A stretch of 64,000 nucleotides of DNA from contig NW_026866721.1 of the NCBI RefSeq assembly GCF_026571515.1, positions 248,001-312,000 of the forward strand. Direction: 5' to 3'. Numbering within the stretch: position 1 is the stretch's first letter; every line of letters begins with the position of its first letter. Shown piece by piece: positions 1 through 9,092 of this stretch. The stretch comes from Ruditapes philippinarum (lineage: Eukaryota). Position numbers and translations under genes: made by a program. A model generated the notes under the pieces. The model was not told where the DNA came from. It ran no database searches and saw nothing but the letters and a program-made list of their open reading frames with translations.

Positions 1-2951
1 GTGAAACAAATATTGACGACAAGGATAGTTGTGGCTATACCATCCTGCATCAGGAGAATGACAACACATTGCTGAGCAAAATACCAAAAGTTAGGAAGAA
101 CAACCATTGCCATGGATACATGAAAACATCAACGGTATACCTGATAATTGCTACAACAATAATCGTGTCTGCCATCGTCTCTTCTAGTAGTGGAATTTTG
201 GTTTATTTCGTGACAAAGGAGCGCATGGAATGCACTTGTAACATTCAAGGAATGAAATTCGGATCACCAGAGGTATCCCATACTATGACAAAAAGTGCAA
301 CAGTTGCATTGACTTCCGGTTTATCCGAAGCTATCTCTCTACCAAGTGAAATGTCAACGGATTCTACAACAATAACACCAAACTATTCGTCAACCGATCG
401 TGACATCTCTCTACCAAGTGAAATGACAACGGTGTCTACATTCGAGACGCCAAACAATTTGTCAACTGAACGCGACTCTCAAGGAGTAACGACAACAGCA
501 GCAACAACTCCTGAATATGAAGTTTCCGCATCAAATGTAGTTTGGAATTCGACAACCTCTACTATAAAAGGTTTACTTTTGTACAGAAATAAATATTGTC
601 GCTTTGAAAATTTTTTATTCTATGGAGCATGATTAAATCGTTGAATATTTAGAGATTGGTCTCATGTTGACTTTCAAAAGTTTTCTTTATTTTATCATGA
701 AACCTTTTTCTGCGCTTATTGAAATCAAAGCAACGTAGTGCATTGATTTTTTGGAATTAAACTAGTGCCGTGTTAACGTGATTGGCATAATCAGATAACT
801 ATAATATATCCTTGATTTTTACTTATCCTTGATTATTAAGTATCCTTGGTAACTTATTTCATTGGTTATACATGATTGATAATTGCATTTTCTTGATTAA
901 ACCTCCTTCATCATTACATATACATATAGATCGTTTTTCCGACTTTGTAAATAGTAGCGTAACCGCCATCTTCTAATCCTTGAATATAATAACTATATCC
1001 TAAGTTTTTAATATGTATATCCTTGATTATTATATATCCTTAAATATTTATACATGGTTGTTGCATATCTGATAATTACCTATAAAAGCCAATTCCATGA
1101 ACTCGACGTTTTACTGTAAGTTGTAGAATATGTCTTTGAAACTTTCAGGAAAACCATGTCCAGATGACTGGTTAAAAACTTCATCGTCTTGTTACTATTT
1201 TAGCACAGATTCTAAAAACTGGACGGATGCTTTGGTCAGTATTTGTGGTCTGACTTCATTATCAGCTTGATATTTTGCCAGTGTAATGTTTATTATGTAA
1301 TGATATTATATCGATATTAGAAATTGATGGCATATGATTATAAACAGGCCTTGTCATCCGCCCTTTTTAATTTAAAAAAGAGATAGGAAAGTCAAAATTA
1401 TTACACATATATTCACAGAACGCTTTAAATTATTGAATGTNNNNNNNNNNNNNNNNNNNNNNNNNNNNNNNNNNNNNNNNNNNNNNNNNNNNNNNNNNNN
1501 NNNNNNNNNNNNNNNNNNNNNNNNNNNNNNNNNNNNNNNNNNNNNNNNNNNNNNNNNNNNNNNNNNNNNNNNNNNNNNNNNNNNNNNNNNNNNNNNNNNN
1601 NNNNNNNNNNNNNNNNNNNNNNNNNNNNNNNNNNNNNNNNNNNNNNNNNNNNNNNNNNNNNNNNNNNNNNNNNNNNNNNNNNNNNNNNNGAACTCTTTAT
1701 CTCTTTTAGACAAAGACACATCGTTGAAAGATAAATGCAAAGCCGTGTTTTTATGATCACGTGTTATTTTTTCTACTCTTTTATTGTACTAGGAAGCCTG
1801 CAAAGCATTTGATAGTAAACTTGTTGAGATATCAGATATTGATGAAGACAATATAATGAGAACCAAGGCAAGGAACGTATATAGTGAGTAACAATTATTG
1901 CTCTCTTGGTCAATGAAAAAAAATAAAATAAATAAACATTGCAGACTAGGTTTGGTTAAGTCTGTCAATAAAGGACAATGCTATGCAACATCTCTCATGC
2001 CCTGTAGCACCGGCTGAAGCAGTATTCAATCTCTAACACTATAAAATATTTGGATCATTGGTCCTGAAGGACCGGGAAAAAAATAACAGCACTTTAACTG
2101 CATTTCACATTGACTGAAAAAGGGAACAATGCATGTACTATCAAAGCTAACTAGAGACGGAATTATACATATACGTTGTGTTTTGTCACAACGACAACTG
2201 ATTCGATTTCTGTTTAGATTAGTTACGATTATTTGTTTACAAAATGGATAAAACATAAACGCCGCATTTATATCGGGCATAGGTCTACTTATGCAATATC
2301 ATGATCATTTTAAAGATGAAGAATGATTGATCAATATTCAGTTTATAAACTCACATTTATAAGCATTGCGTTTTTTGACTATAATTTTAAGAATATAAAA
2401 ATACGAATATTGGTAATACAAATATTACTGTTCATGCGTAATACTCATTACCTGGAATTATATGAGCCGTGTCACGACAAAACCAACATAGTGGGTTTGC
2501 GACCAGCATGGATCCAGACCAGCCTGCGCATCCGCGCAGTCTGATCAGGATCCATGCTGTTCGCTATCAGTTTCTCCACTTGTAATAGAGTTGGTAAGCG
2601 AACAGCATGGATCCTGATCAGACTGCGCGGATGCGCAGGCTGGTCTGGATCCATGCTGGTCGCAAACGCACTATGTTGGTTTTGTCGTGACACGGCTCAT
2701 ATAACGTTTCAGGTAACTATTGGATCGGATTAACAGATCAAAGAGATGAAGGCGTGTGGATTTGGAGCGGGAGTAATACTCGGCTAACATCAGAAATGTA
2801 CACGAACTGGTCACCTGGGCAACCCGATGACGCCAGGGGGCGTGGTGAAGATTGTGCTTCTTTAGAAAAACGTTACTCATTTCGCTGGAATGACGAGGAA
2901 TGTTATATGAAATTAAGATACGTCTGTGAAATAAATTTGCCCAAGAGTTAA
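1..2951 (+). CDS. Type II transmembrane C-type lectin receptor (perlucin-like CTLD, QPD/WND type) with Ser/Thr-rich stalk; 5' end lies outside the window
   Basis: Exons <1-570, 1149-1234, 1793-1883, 2713-2951; GT-AG introns of phase 1, 0, 1. The frame is open from base 3 (ETNIDDKDSCGYTIL...). TM segment VYLIIATTIIVSAIVSSSSGILVYFV. CTLD: CPDDW...CYYFS...WTDALEAC...YWIGLTD...WSPGQPD...EDC...WNDEEC...YVCE. Confidence 0.9.
333..476 (+). repeat. 72-bp in-frame tandem duplication in the mucin-like stalk
   Basis: ISLPSEMSTDSTTITPNYSSTDRD (333-404) and ISLPSEMTTVSTFETPNNLSTERD (405-476). Confidence 0.85.
1441..1689. other. Assembly gap (N run)
   Basis: Run of N. Confidence 1.
2463..2699. mobile_element. 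~240-bp palindromic MITE (TGAGCCGCGTCACGACAAAACCAAC family), intronic
   Basis: Near-perfect fold-back with long TIRs and AT-rich flanks; nine copies in the window. Confidence 0.9.
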
Positions 2952-3032
2952 AGTGACCATAAGTTCATCCCAGGAATAGTGAGAAAGACAAAATGTCAAT
3001 AGCTATTCGGACCTTTGTGGAGCTTCTTTCTT

Positions 3033-3380
3033 TTAAAGCTGCACGCTTCCAGATTAGCCAAATTATCTTTAAAAATCTATCTAAGACTTTTAAAAAAAGT
3101 TTAAAAAATCTCCGACATTTAAGTACAATGTAATAATTTGAATTATGTGCGATTAAAGATCAATTGTGCAGTATTCATCATCATATTTCTACTGCGTAAC
3201 TAACGCAGTAAGGGCTATTTTTGCATATTTTGACCTCTTTTTGGTTATTTGCGTGGACTGTAAATGTCGTTTGCAATTTATTGATCATATACGTTGTTCT
3301 TTTGATAATATTTTTTACTTTTAAATAGACGTTAAAATGTTCAGGAACATCAGTATGAATCTGGAGGCGTGCTGCTTACT
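3033..3380. mobile_element. TTAA-flanked Kolobok-like MITE (AGCTGCACGC family)
   Basis: TTAAAGCTGCACGCTTCCAGATT...AATCTGGAGGCGTGCTGCTT; related copies near 31385 and 57220. Confidence 0.55.
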
Positions 3381-4926
3381 TGTTAATTAACTGCTATTTG
3401 AGCCTCATTGTACTTTTATTCATGTTTGTCACCTCATTGTGTCATGTTTGTACATGGAATACGAGAAATACATGTTTTCTGACTTGACCTGACTTGAATA
3501 ACAATCGATAACGATTTATATTAAGTAATGCCATTGAATCACAAGACTAAGTAAAAATAACATAAAATGACTATATTTTCAAAGCATACAGTAAATATGA
3601 TGTAAAGTAATATATTAATGTGGTGTTAATTCACATTGTTAAGTACAAATGTGAAATGTTGAATTCTTTGGACTGGTACACAGCTTATGGCATCTTTCTG
3701 TATCTTGCATTTTTATCCAAAATCTAAAATTACGAATACTCTCTTGGAGGACTCGCTCATAACGGCAACCGGTGGCGAGTAAAAATAAACTCAATTACAC
3801 ACACACATAGTCTTATATAGGCTTTGCAGTTGTGTAAGAGTCCAATAAAATCAGTATTGTACAAAGCAATGAATATTGATATCTTTATTGTACACCTTCA
3901 ACTTTTCGACAGAATTTAGTTACTGCGAATACAATTTGTAATTGGAAGTTTAAAAAATAAAAAAGGCTATAATGAGTACAATTGTGATTTTATACGAATT
4001 TTTTTGTCTGGCAAATGGAAACGAGGCTGAATTGCTAAAATTTGATTCATTTATGATTTATATTGAGAGATCACGTGGTCAAAACGCTGGAAGTTCATTT
4101 TTACATTTTATAAGGTGTGAATAAAAAAAACATTTTTTCTTGCGTATTTTTAATTCAATTGTAATACAATGATTTATTTCTACATGCATAATGCATTGCG
4201 TGTATACAAAAACACTCACTGTATTGTCAGAATTGCTTTTGTAATCAAAAAGCAAATTATTAACAACTACTACGTTCCAAATAAAATAGATTTATAGCGT
4301 GTACATATATATGTGAATAAAACATATACAAGTTATGATATCTACATGTCTATCATAACATTATAAAAGGCATCAGTATTTCGGAGTAATTCGGAATACA
4401 TCATTACCAAAGTAATTACAAAGAAAACGCAAAACCTATTGACAGCAAAATTAAACTGTTGATATTATGTGAAATATTTTTGCGTTTGAACATATTTACA
4501 TATTTGCATCAATCAATTTACAAAATGTTAATTGTATTTCTTCATTTTGTTCATCCTCAATTAGGAATGCATATATACATGTGCTTATTAATTATACATG
4601 AAATTACGACAGATCTTTAGCAGTGAACCCTTAATTTGGTGGCACCGGAAGTGTCTTGACTTGGCAAGTAATATAAATAGAGCAAGACATGTCCGTGCAG
4701 CGTAACCAGGCTCGTTATCGTTAGTACCTCAATTTTTAATATTTTGATATTAAAATTCATAAAATTTAAAAAAAACAGCTGATGCAAATACGAAGCTTGG
4801 CAAATGCATAAAACAAATTCAGTAGGATAAATAACGTGCATTGTTTTTTGACTTTGTGCGTTCAGCGTCTGAAAATAAATATACATGTTTTTATGACAAA
4901 AGAATATCGTCTGCTCCAAAAATATC

Positions 4927-7900
4927 TTATGCTGGGAACTGTGAAGCACTTGACTTTTCACACACGTACATTGCCGGATATTCACAACTTTGAGCATTCC
5001 AGGAAAATCCCAATGTTCCCGCCATGTAACCACACATTCCTTTCGTGGGTTTGCCGTCTGCCCAGTGAGTATAATGTGTGTCTTCTGTTTTCTCGTTCAT
5101 CCATTTCCACTGTCCTTCAAGCGTTACAAGCCCAATCCAGAAGTCACCTGCGTTTTAGTTTTAAGATTATTTTTTTAAATTTTTTTTTCAAGCAAATTTG
5201 AATGACAATTATATTAATCATGATTCGTGTTAAATTGAAAGAAAATATAAACTTTTGGTGCAAAAATTATCTTAATTTATGTTTTGGCTTTAAAGCTAAA
5301 TATTTGACATAAATGTTAATATACAAAACTGCGACCATTAATCTTTCTTAATAATTCACTGTTAATGAATAAAAAATATGTATAAAAATGTGCAAACCGT
5401 GCACTACTTTTTTAACTCATTACTCATTTGGTTTTAATCTTCAGCTCTTTAAAGATAATGAAGGGAAAAATATATAAAGCATGCATACCACCAGTGCAGC
5501 TATAAATTCCACAATGTTGCCATCTTATTTTCGGATCTGTTGTGTAGCACCAAGGAAACCCCTCACCGTCTGGATCACGACAATAATTAGAGGCATTGAC
5601 TAGAGTCTTGTCTGGGAATGTTTCCGCTTTGTTCCGCGTATGAATATGCGGCGTCTGTGAATCCCATCGTTGACACACGTGACCGTCATATGTCGTCTGC
5701 CGCACTCCATTATATTCACTTGACTTATTTTGATAACAATCTTAAACAAAAACATATACTCATATTACAATATTTTTCTAAATTCTATTTTGTTTTTAAC
5801 GTCTTTTTAAACAAGGGAAAAGACAAGGAGAAAGTTGTGGTTACTTTTCATCACGGATTTATATTACACATTTTGTGTCCATTTAGTTTATAAGTGTGAT
5901 ACGGTTTCGAACACACACAAAACAAACAAACAGGAAATTACAATTTTGAAAAATATAAATGGATAGTTGGATATCAAAGTTTAGTTCCTGAAATACATTA
6001 AAACAATTTTAACTTTGATTAATTTGTTTGCATCTGGATTTTTTAAATTTGAATTTATTTTAAAAACTTTTTTTCCCAATTGTTTCGTCATTTCTCGTTA
6101 ACTCAACATATAATAATGACCCGATTTTTGAACGTGTTTGACATATTGTCTCACAAACTCATCTTCTGCCTCTGATTTAATCCCGGCAAGATAACCCCCT
6201 TCATTTTGGCAACGAGTCTGAAAAGAATTTTAAGCTTTTTTTAACCGAAATTATGATGTTTGATTTGAGGGAAATGTCATTGTTCTTGATTTTAACTATT
6301 GAATGTATAAACTCGAAATTAATAAATGGATTACTTTAGATATGTTTTAACAATCCAATAATATTATGTTTTCGTGATACAAATGTACTAATAATAAATT
6401 CAGTCGAAATGCAGAGTAAAGGAATAAATAAATATGCAACCACATATTAGTATAAATATCATTGTCTATCATAGTTGCAAATAATGTCAAGAAGGTTTTA
6501 AGAAAAAGAGCGATAAAACAAGAGAAAAAGAAACAAAAAACAAATTAATCTGTCCCGGATTTTAAACGGATAAAGGGAAACAAACGTCTATCTCGTTTTT
6601 TTGTAATGTAACGTGTAATGTAATCTTGTAATCCATTTTGTAATGTATCTTGGTATCTTGTAATGTATATTGGTATCTTGTAATTAAACTTGTAATGTAT
6701 CTTCTAATGTATCTTACCAATGCAGTTAACCACGTGACAGATTCGTTACTGAACAAGTAGCACGAGTTGCCGTACTCTATCCAGTTACCATGACAACCTG
6801 TTATATATAGAACCAAATTCTGATACGATTCATAGTTTTATATTAATTAGAATTAAAACGACTTCTTTTTCCCTTTGACTTAAAAGAAACAGCAAATGGT
6901 AACAATGTATTGGAGCCGCGCCATTAACAAAACCAACATAGTGCGTTTGCGACCAGCATGGATCCAGACCAGCCTGCGCATCCGTGCAGTCTGATCAGGA
7001 TCCATGCTGTTCGCTTAATAACCCTATTACAAGTAAAGAGACTGATAGCGAACAGCATGGATCCTGTTCAGCCTGCGCGGATGCGCAGGCTGGTCTGGAT
7101 CCATGCTGGTTGCAAACGCACTATGTTGGTTTTGTCGTGACGCGGCTCATTTTTGTTAAGTTGCTTATCTGTTATTGTTAAATGTGTTTTTACTTCAAAG
7201 GCATACATGCATGTTCAAATTATCTACATGTACATGTCTGTAATACATTTAACTTAACCACATCAGACCAATCTTTTCGAAATCAAAATCACATATGCCT
7301 ACAACCTTGTATATTTAGTGACAATACTTTTAAAGAAGACCTTTTGATACTAATTTAAACTAAGCCTTGGAGGTAAAATGTCTTAACCACTGTTGTCCGT
7401 GTGCATGCTCAATCAAATCGAGCTTAAAACATTGCAGCATATTCAATTTTGCCATGTTGACACTCTGTAAGGTTTCCAGTTTTCCTTTTTTGCAGACAGC
7501 ACACAAGTAACAAAACAAACATCATGATAGTAAAGCAATCTTATCTTCTACTTTATATTTGTATCCCTCTTATACTTTGTTACTGCTCATATGTTTAAAC
7601 ATGTTTTCGTTTCTATAGCTTCGAATGCTTAAGGAAAGGACAGTTAATAATGTTGCTAGAACTTGTTGTTCAACCCTTTTACTCTTTGTTAAAATTGTTC
7701 TTATGTGAAAATAATGTTCTTAAATTGTATTCAAAGAGCAATAAAATATTATTAAACTAAAATAAACTTATATCTCCAAATCAATAATAAAAAATACCTT
7801 GGCTAACAATTGATATAGCATTGATCCCTTCGTCTGAGTTTTCCTTTTCAGCTGCCGCTTCGATTTCTGGACTTTGCACTTGTTTCTCGGAAATGGCAAA

Positions 7901-8170
7901 GTCTGATGGGAGGATCACTTTGCATTCCGTGTTTTTATTGGTCAGAAGAAACACAAGAACTCCGCATCCGATGCAACAAATTGCAGCAACGTTCAGGATA
8001 AAAAATATCATCAAACAAACTGACGATCTCTTCAGATACCGATCACCATGAACTTTTCTGGGTGTGTTTATGCCATTCCGCTTATGTGATTCAAGAATTG
8101 TATACACGTTTGGTGATGTTTGAGTTGTCGTGCTGAGATTGTCCAAATTATCAAAATCAGTTTCATCCAT
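4927..8170 (-). CDS. Type II transmembrane receptor with a C-type lectin domain split by an inserted kringle domain, 340 aa
   Basis: Exons 8170-7798, 6797-6718, 6217-6121, 5740-5489 (kringle), 5147-4927; 1023 nt with phases 1, 0, 1, 1. CTLD N-half: CHGNWIEYGNSCYLFS...WLTALTRCQNEGGYLAGIKSEAEDEFV. Kringle: CYQ...YNG...CQRWDSQTPH...NYCRDPDGEGFPWCYTTDPKIRWQHCGIYSC. CTLD C-half: FWIGL...WKW...YTHWADGKP...CGYM...WNAQSC...YVCEK. Confidence 0.85.
5489..5740 (-). CDS. Kringle-domain exon (252 nt, phase 1-1) of the above gene
   Basis: All six kringle Cys and the NYCR(D)PD and PWCYT signatures; acceptor tttaag, donor gtatgc. Confidence 0.92.
6912..7149. mobile_element. Palindromic MITE copy
   Basis: Same family as 2463-2699. 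Confidence 0.88.
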
Positions 8171-9092
8171 TTTGAATTTAATGTTGAAGTATTTTCACTC
8201 AATTTACATATAAAAACATGTTTACATGTTTACCTTAAATTACTAACAAAGTCTGAAAAGATTGATAGCTCGGTTTGTCGGTAAGCGATTATGTGCGGTT
8301 AAACTTTAACAATTTCACGATTAACATTCACTTAATTATACAAATTTGCATTATGTTATGACAAAAAGCCGTGCGAGATAAATATAAACAACAATAAACA
8401 AAATATAATAAGAAGTTTTAATGAATTTGCATATACATGTTGTATATTTTAAGATTAAAAGGTTAAGTAAACAACATAATTCTATTCTTTCCGGGAAATG
8501 ATAAGCTTGATTGCGTAGATGAAGTTAACACTAGGCTAGACGGAGTACAATATTGATTTAATATGGACTTTTTGGACTCGGAAAATAAATGAACAATATT
8601 AATTTGATATAGGTTTTTGGACTAGCAATAACAACGAGACTTGATTGATATGACTGGATCGAATATTGATTTTCATTGGGAGATATCATGGTGCAAACGC
8701 TGAAAATTCATTTGTTACATTTTTTTACGGTGTGATATAACTAAAGTTACACTTGTAGTCAAACAAATACAATATGAGTCCAACAACAACAACAACAAAT
8801 AACCAGTCAATATACACAGGTTAGTCTGGTTCCAAGCATCTATTATAAACATATAGTCAAAGGGCAGGTAATACAGACTATACAAAGGTTTATTTAAATA
8901 ATGTTTCTTTAAACTGGATATTTACTCAAAGAACAGATTGAAATCCAAGAAACTATAAAATCGGATGCATCCAAATTTAATACATGAACACAATACTTTT
9001 ATACAATACAATAAAGTTACCAACATAATAAGGCTGTCTACATGGTTTAATAAAATACATATGATGTATTACTAAAAAACTGTTACACTTTA

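Follow-up and report, generated by a model that had tools for sequence, protein, structure and literature searches.

Within a 64,000-nucleotide stretch of the Manila clam (Ruditapes philippinarum) genome (hereafter the window), we analyzed a five-exon gene on the minus strand that is predicted to encode a membrane receptor with a complete kringle nested inside its C-type lectin domain (CTLD), together with a convergently oriented, kringle-less neighboring paralog (Table 1). The five exons sum to 1023 nt, specifying 340 amino acids plus a stop codon, and the interval 4927-8170 contains no N letters. We searched the exons singly, and carried out full-length work on a public protein, P0059 (XP_060576104.1, Ruditapes philippinarum, 340 aa, named 'apolipoprotein(a)-like' in RefSeq), not on exons that we had joined ourselves.

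Table 1. Exons of the kringle-bearing receptor gene and of the CTLD part of its neighbor, in window coordinates (a slash in a splice signal marks the exon boundary)
Feature	Coordinates	Strand	Description
exon 1	7798..8170	(-)	373 nt, ends phase 1, donor G/gtattt
exA	6718..6797	(-)	CTLD beta0-beta1 and start of alpha1 (CHGNWIEYGNSCYLFSNESVTWLTAL)
exB	6121..6217	(-)	CTLD alpha1 Cys through helix alpha2 (TRCQNEGGYLAGIKSEAEDEFVRQYVKHVQKS)
kringle exon	5489..5740	(-)	252 nt, phase 1-1, six Cys, complete PF00051, aa 185-267
exD	4927..5147	(-)	CTLD beta2 (FWIGL) to beta5 (YVCEK), then tail and stop
convergent neighbor paralog, CTLD part	1149..2951	(+)	exA' 1149-1234, exB' 1793-1883, exD' 2713-2951

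The kringle and the two lectin halves had been proposed in a preliminary description made from the sequence alone, and the coordinates, strand and phases it gave for exA, exB, the kringle exon and exD were reproduced by translation and splice signals. Its six-cysteine kringle on a single phase 1-1 exon matched the Pfam Kringle profile from end to end (positions 1-79 of 79; E = 2e-23, 82.8 bits in the single-exon search), with PF00051 scores of 77.5-82.8 bits over all searches (cut-off 34.3) and cysteines at aa 185, 206, 237, 248, 260 and 265; the exon is bounded by an aag/A acceptor and a G/gtatgc donor. Upstream of it, exA (acceptor cag/G, donor TTG/gtaaga; phase 1 in, phase 0 out) matches positions 1-29 of a hidden Markov model (HMM) of the family's N-terminal lectin half (E = 2e-13), and exB alone (acceptor cag/A, donor G/gtcatt; phase 1 out) covers positions 11-38 of Pfam Lectin_C. 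Downstream, exD alone (acceptor cag/G, phase 1 in, closing at TAA) covers Lectin_C positions 41-107 (E = 2e-10) and, starting at the WIGL strand, can be aligned with the CTLDs of the mannose receptor and DEC-205; the open reading frame (ORF) track cuts this exon to a 57-aa ORF, which bears out the earlier remark that the track had missed the C-terminal half. Exon 1 lies in an upstream ORF spanning 8170-7781 and equals P0059 aa 1-125 at 100% identity. Its product begins with an acidic cytoplasmic tail carrying NVYTIL (a YxxL motif), followed by basic residues before the membrane, a transmembrane helix at aa ~51-76, a juxtamembrane cysteine and a short stalk. A degenerate short tandem repeat (TGTAATGTATCTT-like units) occupies 6607-6715 of the exA-exB intron, directly after the exA donor.

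P0059 was found by a HMMER search with the kringle exon against 1.84 billion representative proteins. Its kringle, at aa 185-267, is 100% identical to the kringle exon, and exon 1 and exD also map to it at 100%; the automatic RefSeq model is the same as the gene model, including the 340-aa length, that had been proposed from sequence alone. In Pfam, a full kringle stands in P0059 between Lectin_C stretches of ~1-38 and 40-107, and against PF00059 the protein scores 54.4 bits (cut-off 22.6) in two stretches, of which positions 40-107 give the better one. The expectation that profiles would report the lectin as two broken halves was accurate, and the architecture is hidden from profile-based naming as well, with RefSeq using 'apolipoprotein(a)-like', 'plasminogen-like' and 'asialoglycoprotein receptor 1-like'. 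The CTLD cysteine framework (C0-C0', C1-C4 and C2-C3) is present as C126, C137, C154, C306, C322 and C330, along with FWIGL; C306, C322 and C330 are invariant in the nested family described below, and C154 nearly so. The topology is type II, with no signal peptide, one transmembrane segment near the N-terminus and a C-terminal CTLD, and a helix at aa 48-78 in an AlphaFold2 (AF2) model covers the hydrophobic stretch at aa 51-76. Just outside the membrane, a cysteine at P0059 aa 83 in an N-x-x-C motif is kept in the six family members with transmembrane segment and stalk, and may form an interchain disulfide.

For structure prediction with AF2, we used a 94-row alignment of family proteins and unaltered exon translations of CTLD halves and kringles, with rows selected for correct MAFFT placement; otherwise kringle-less C-halves landed on the kringle. 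Block-mean predicted local distance difference test (pLDDT) scores were 72-94 in the N-half and 69-92 in the C-half, with 64-91 in the kringle between them and ~32 in the stalk. The secondary structure of the model runs from beta0, beta1, alpha1 and alpha2 (H167-181) into the kringle, and from there into beta2 (E270-277) and on to beta5, with linkers of 3-4 residues on each side of the kringle. This is the alpha2-beta2 loop insertion that the preliminary description had placed there, and the intact CTLD it expected from prediction of the 340-aa protein also emerged, both halves giving one canonical CTLD. The top Foldseek matches in the PDB are complete CTLDs (TMt 0.67-0.89), in alignments spanning ~215 columns for ~130-residue targets. 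With VIA-align, the predicted model (residues 125-335) aligned to codakine (2vuv) with Z 21.2 and a root-mean-square deviation of 1.4 Å over 123/129 residues, and ASGR1, MGL and CD23 scored Z 19.5-20.4. CTLDs also aligned across residues 125-337 of an independent ESM Atlas model of the same protein. In both the AF2 and the ESM Atlas predictions, then, a single CTLD is assembled from the two halves and the kringle projects from it as an excursion. In our proposal the two lectin halves would still fold as one CTLD, with a cross-half disulfide C154-C330 expected by homology, and the kringle ends would be pinned by their own first-last disulfide, C185-C265, likewise by homology.

It is conceivable that the halves do not refold within one chain, yielding a domain-swapped dimer or leaving non-lectin linkers on either side of a functional kringle, and both the shortness of the linkers and the conserved juxtamembrane cysteine, which could make dimers, are in keeping with this. 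We consider it very improbable, however: two predictors return a complete CTLD formed within one chain, all core residues of the CTLD, cysteines and WIGL among them, are kept in both halves, and the N- and C-termini of a kringle are adjacent, so that a loop can hold one.

The nested layout is not confined to this gene. Across the 1.41-Gb assembly (15,874 contigs), we identified the order exA, exB, one or more phase 1-1 kringle exons and exD at at least nine other loci, a recurrence far beyond chance. Eight loci besides this gene keep all of exB, kringle and exD with canonical splice sites, one of them with two kringles; loci were extended and scanned with HMMs from the family alignment, exA being detected at only some of them. 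The shared exon structure comprises exA (phase 0 out), exB (phase 1 out), a phase 1-1 kringle exon (ttcag/A ... G/gtaagt) and exD, and the closest genomic relatives of exD (on contigs C10961, C1741, C4740, C1078, C6270, C15703, C65 and C4865) all lie 0.6-1.4 kb downstream of a same-strand kringle exon. At the protein level, 14 RefSeq proteins of Ruditapes and Mercenaria and one protein from a Logan contig show a full Kringle in Pfam with a stretch of Lectin_C on either side. The Ruditapes products include XP_060558945/6/7, XP_060557614, XP_060579384, XP_060590989, XP_060595519, XP_060591426 and XP_060597098, and three come from Mercenaria mercenaria (XP_053377567, XP_045165015 and XP_045165013). 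The junctions are fixed in the family alignment, reading ...(D/E)C[kringle]C(P/T)G(G/R)(N/D/S)(Y/W/F)W.... Where the preliminary description had considered this gene alone, the nesting proves common to a multigene family of venerid clams. In an ectodomain tree, this gene groups with the three Mercenaria proteins, apart from the remaining Ruditapes copies (support 100/98), indicating that the nested architecture is older than the split between Ruditapes and Mercenaria. No further nested members appeared among the best 120 of 366 matches to the family profile in 5.8 billion proteins, and the C-half region alone, used as query in a protein search, found only the protein itself because it has too few 5-residue words in common with anything else.

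Transcript evidence was obtained for a paralog, LOC132719211 (contig C10961). A 1352-nt Logan contig encodes P0330, which corresponds to exon 1-exA, and P0150, which reads through exB, kringle and exD uninterrupted, while the same exons span 7.4 kb in the genome; the contig is accordingly a spliced mRNA in which the kringle is joined between the lectin halves. This bears on whether the nested gene might be an artefact of gene model or assembly, its kringle exon belonging to another transcript, being dead, or having been misplaced by misassembly. Such a reading could draw on the fragmentation of the assembly and on an N run 3.2 kb away. Yet the same order, strand, phases and splice sites recur at at least nine other loci on different contigs, nested proteins come also from the chromosome-scale Mercenaria assembly, the paralog has its spliced mRNA contig, the frames are intact and under purifying selection, and the whole of 4927-8170 is free of N. 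We give the artefact almost no credence; in particular, the misassembly that the preliminary description had allowed for is not borne out, the layout recurring on many contigs and in a second species.

Kringle number itself appears more variable. RefSeq isoforms of LOC132719211 carry two kringles (X1, X2) or one (X3), and its mRNA contig has a single kringle that looks like a hybrid of two exons, indicating that the number varies among transcripts or alleles. The single-kringle contig may stem from alternative splicing or from an allele with one kringle, or the assembly may have collapsed two exons that are 93% identical, and kringle exons of this family may behave as cassettes. Since the kringle exon is phase 1-1, skipping it would restore an uninterrupted CTLD, and one may ask whether the main product is a plain lectin receptor, with the kringle exon an optional cassette and the nested form a minor isoform. 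The symmetry of the exon and the LOC132719211 isoforms and contig speak for this. However, all 15 proteins from the two species (14 RefSeq, one Logan) keep at least one kringle, the one-kringle contig may itself be a collapse product, and the kringle is the most conserved segment of the protein, which is hard to reconcile with an exon that is mostly skipped. We regard a predominantly kringle-less product as unlikely. At the genomic locus C10961:213000-222999, the two tandem nested kringle exons (6972-7220 and 8174-8422) differ by dN 0.021 and dS 0.10 (nonsynonymous and synonymous divergence, respectively).

The conservation was quantified among paralogs, whose kringle exons give a dN/dS of 0.20-0.36 and whose exD, the C-half, gives 0.17-0.36. 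Comparing this gene with its paralogs, dN is 0.22-0.29 in the kringle and 0.62-0.69 in the C-half, with dS saturated, and protein identity is 63-69% and 32-40%, respectively. Judged by these substitution patterns, the nested genes are under purifying selection and the kringle insert is the most constrained part of the protein.

We also recorded several loci with incomplete or unusual layouts. At C815:31000-39700, the kringle exon (5675-5922) is split across frames by frameshifts and exD (7419-7625) is intact; this family member is probably a pseudogene. A second locus on C4740 (66000-75999) has exA, exB and a kringle at 2059-7190 and no exD within 2.8 kb downstream; the corresponding RefSeq protein (XP_060590987, 'serine-rich adhesin for platelets-like', 539 aa) has the kringle at its end, and the locus may hold a truncated variant or have been modelled incompletely. 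At C10790:36770-40787 two kringle exons lie in tandem, one of which shares 70% identity with the kringle of the gene in the window, and no CTLD halves were detected within ~1.5 kb; the pair might be related to the donor lineage or belong to a family member whose introns are longer. Finally, a Vibrio-induced 'plasminogen' gene has been described as one that 'belongs to the CTL family' (PMC9125321). The reverse quantitative PCR primer for that gene matches C9765:51950-51975, 7 kb upstream of a kringle exon at C9765:59150-59371, and the forward primer yielded no match; C9765 is not among the nested loci we found.

The neighboring gene in the window offers a view of the kringle-less state. As the preliminary description had observed, its exon boundaries and phases are those of the kringle-bearing gene, and its phase-1 intron (1884-2712) is fully sequenced, free of N, and contains nothing but a hairpin repeat, with no kringle. 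The neighbor also keeps QPD and WND. It serves as a comparator, not as the nearest relative: the CTLD genes closest to the one studied here all carry the kringle. In at least ten other CTLD loci without a kringle, a phase-1 donor follows the alpha2 exon and a phase-1 acceptor precedes (F/Y)WIGL, and ~50 of the 150 best Lectin_C matches in the genome start at profile positions 36-42. That kringle-less paralogs have this phase-1 intron in common fits insertion of an exon into an existing intron, and the sequences are most simply read as the entry of a phase 1-1 kringle exon into a phase-1 intron that was already present within the domain. At least 150 kringle exons were counted in the genome (351 candidates), and the inserted, symmetrical phase 1-1 exon would be one of these single-exon kringles. 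The host intron would already have split the CTLD at that point in a large clam CTLD subfamily; insertion would have taken place before Ruditapes and Mercenaria diverged, followed by gene duplication into the present family.

Several repeats were noted around the two genes. The neighbor's exA'-exB' intron contains an N run at 1441-1689, leaving the phase-1 intron used for comparison untouched, and two 72-nt tandem copies at 333-476, 79% alike, encode its Ser/Thr-rich stalk. A ~250-bp hairpin repeat (108-nt arms, 99% complementary, around a 31-nt loop) occurs at 2458-2704, just before the neighbor's exD' acceptor, and at 6927-7150, in intron 1 of the kringle-bearing gene. Aligned in inverted orientation, these copies are ~95% alike, and they are the source of recurrent 'MDPDQ...' ORFs on both strands; the repeat looks like a miniature inverted-repeat transposable element.

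Residues at the candidate binding sites suggest a division of labor between the two domains. In the CTLD, the Ca2+ site 2 motifs are degenerate, with KPT for EPN/QPD and WNA for WND, and the kringle-bearing gene lacks the EPN/QPD plus WND pair by which C-type lectins are strictly defined; Mercenaria relatives have EPS/EPL with WNG/WKA/WKS at the same motifs. We aligned the kringle with plasminogen kringles 1-5, and compared its candidate lysine pocket, which we take to consist of anionic positions 55/57, cationic positions 35/71 and aromatic positions 62/64/72: D55, E57, R35, R71, W62, Y64 and W72 all match plasminogen K4. In the cytoplasmic tail, all full-length relatives in which the tail is retained share a (D/E)Y(N/S/T)(L/I)L motif. 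A CTLD without a Ca2+/sugar site would serve mainly as a membrane-anchored scaffold, and the conserved kringle with its putative lysine pocket would be the main ligand-binding element, probably for ligands that present lysines in exposed or C-terminal positions, whether on microbes or on matrix or clot proteins of the host; the acidic-YxxL tail would couple binding to endocytosis or signaling. This functional reading, of scaffold CTLD, lysine-binding kringle and YxxL coupling, stands in our judgment slightly short of an even chance. The 'hybrid recognition module' that the preliminary description saw in kringle plus CTLD is likewise an inference.

Considered as a whole, the best explanation is a five-exon gene for a type II receptor, with a kringle nested by exon insertion in a single CTLD, and we hold this with good confidence. 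A number of points weigh against it. The exB donor (G/gtcatt) is weak, and for the junctions 6121->5740 and 5489->5147 the evidence consists of the RefSeq model together with splice signals and conservation across the family; the symmetrical kringle exon could be skipped in some transcripts. AF2 run with a 10-sequence family alignment gave a pLDDT of 39.9, the good model depending on the alignment enriched with exon translations. This gene sits on a long branch (0.63) in the ectodomain tree, and such a copy could be under relaxed constraint. Kringle position 57 is Leu in two paralogs, and every functional statement is read from residues. A more far-reaching proposal would make the kringle-in-CTLD an unrecognized composite module of venerid innate-immune or endocytic receptors, in which kringle pocket and remodeled lectin surface form a joint site and 0, 1 or 2 kringles are tuned by cassette splicing, and which would be the first natural case of one extracellular module tolerated inside another via an intra-domain phase-1 intron; this we find doubtful.

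In exon-shuffling theory, mosaic extracellular proteins are beads on a string, their modules inserted in inter-domain introns. In the clam case, a shuffled module appears to have landed in an intron inside a domain, survived there, been duplicated at least ten-fold and come under purifying selection in two genera, offering a natural, datable example of nested domains arising by exon shuffling. It also points to the CTLD alpha2-beta2 loop as an insertion-tolerant site, of potential use to those who engineer lectin scaffolds. To bivalve immunologists, it suggests a lineage-specific receptor family masked by 'plasminogen-like' and 'apolipoprotein(a)-like' names, whose likely ligand chemistry would be of lysine type and not of the sugar type that the label 'C-type lectin' implies. 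The arrangement should surprise the fields of domain evolution and lectins alike, with function put forward as a proposal from sequence.

Full-text literature searches on kringle and CTLD, bivalves, Ruditapes/Mercenaria or domain insertion turned up no account of a kringle nested in a CTLD, nor, in the literature searched, any report of a kringle as insert or of a CTLD as host of a nested domain. A 2026 survey of domain insertions mentions neither kringle nor CTLD, and a paper on the Ruditapes 'mannose receptor' goes no further than to name KR as one of the domains found in its 13 genes. The preliminary description knew of no described protein like this one; none of the papers found describes such nesting, but in databases family members already exist as automatic RefSeq models.

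Among known systems, the group II type II CTLD receptors (ASGPR, MGL, CD23, DC-SIGN) share the tail with a Tyr motif, the single transmembrane segment and the C-terminal long-form CTLD encoded by three exons, and are among the best structural matches. Their CTLD, however, is uninterrupted and keeps EPN/QPD and WND with Ca2+-dependent sugar binding, and unlike them the clam protein has no predicted coiled-coil neck (stalk pLDDT ~32). Similarity to these vertebrate receptors is at the level of fold, with ~30% sequence similarity, and the RefSeq name 'asialoglycoprotein receptor 1-like' is automatic. The kringles of plasminogen and apolipoprotein(a) (K1, K4, KIV-10) share the full PF00051 match, the six cysteines and the aligned K4 pocket residues, but come in tandem arrays ahead of a serine protease, none inside another domain. 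We rejected membership of the plasminogen/apolipoprotein(a) family, the clam protein having one kringle and no PF00089 protease domain. Amphioxus 'plasminogen-like' proteins of CTLD-EGF-kringle or kringle-CTLD type (P0159, P0169, P0048, P0176, P0174 and P0076) combine the same two domain types; we also rejected these as a precedent, as their CTLD is continuous (positions 2-106/107) and their kringles are tandem, with none nested.

The mannose-receptor family (MRC1, PLA2R, DEC-205, Endo180) supplies the closest CTLD sequences in the PDB, and its fibronectin type II (FNII) domain, which has a kringle-like fold, adjoins CTLDs. An ESM Atlas feature search returned FNII+Lectin_C clusters, and the Mercenaria homologue P0152 is named PLA2R-like. 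Proteins of that family differ in being type I and in combining FNII and a ricin-type domain with a series of 8-10 tandem CTLDs, nothing being nested; membership was rejected for the clam protein, which is type II with one CTLD and neither FNII nor ricin domain. The CTLD of tetranectin (CLEC3B) binds plasminogen kringle 4, a pairing of two separate proteins, whereas in the clam CTLD and kringle are fused, one inside the other. The integrin alpha-I domain in its beta-propeller is likewise a self-contained module with adjacent termini placed in a host loop, although the folds differ. Measured against these systems, the domain types of the clam receptor are ordinary, while their arrangement is undescribed and lineage-restricted, carried by proteins that stand in RefSeq under misleading automatic names.

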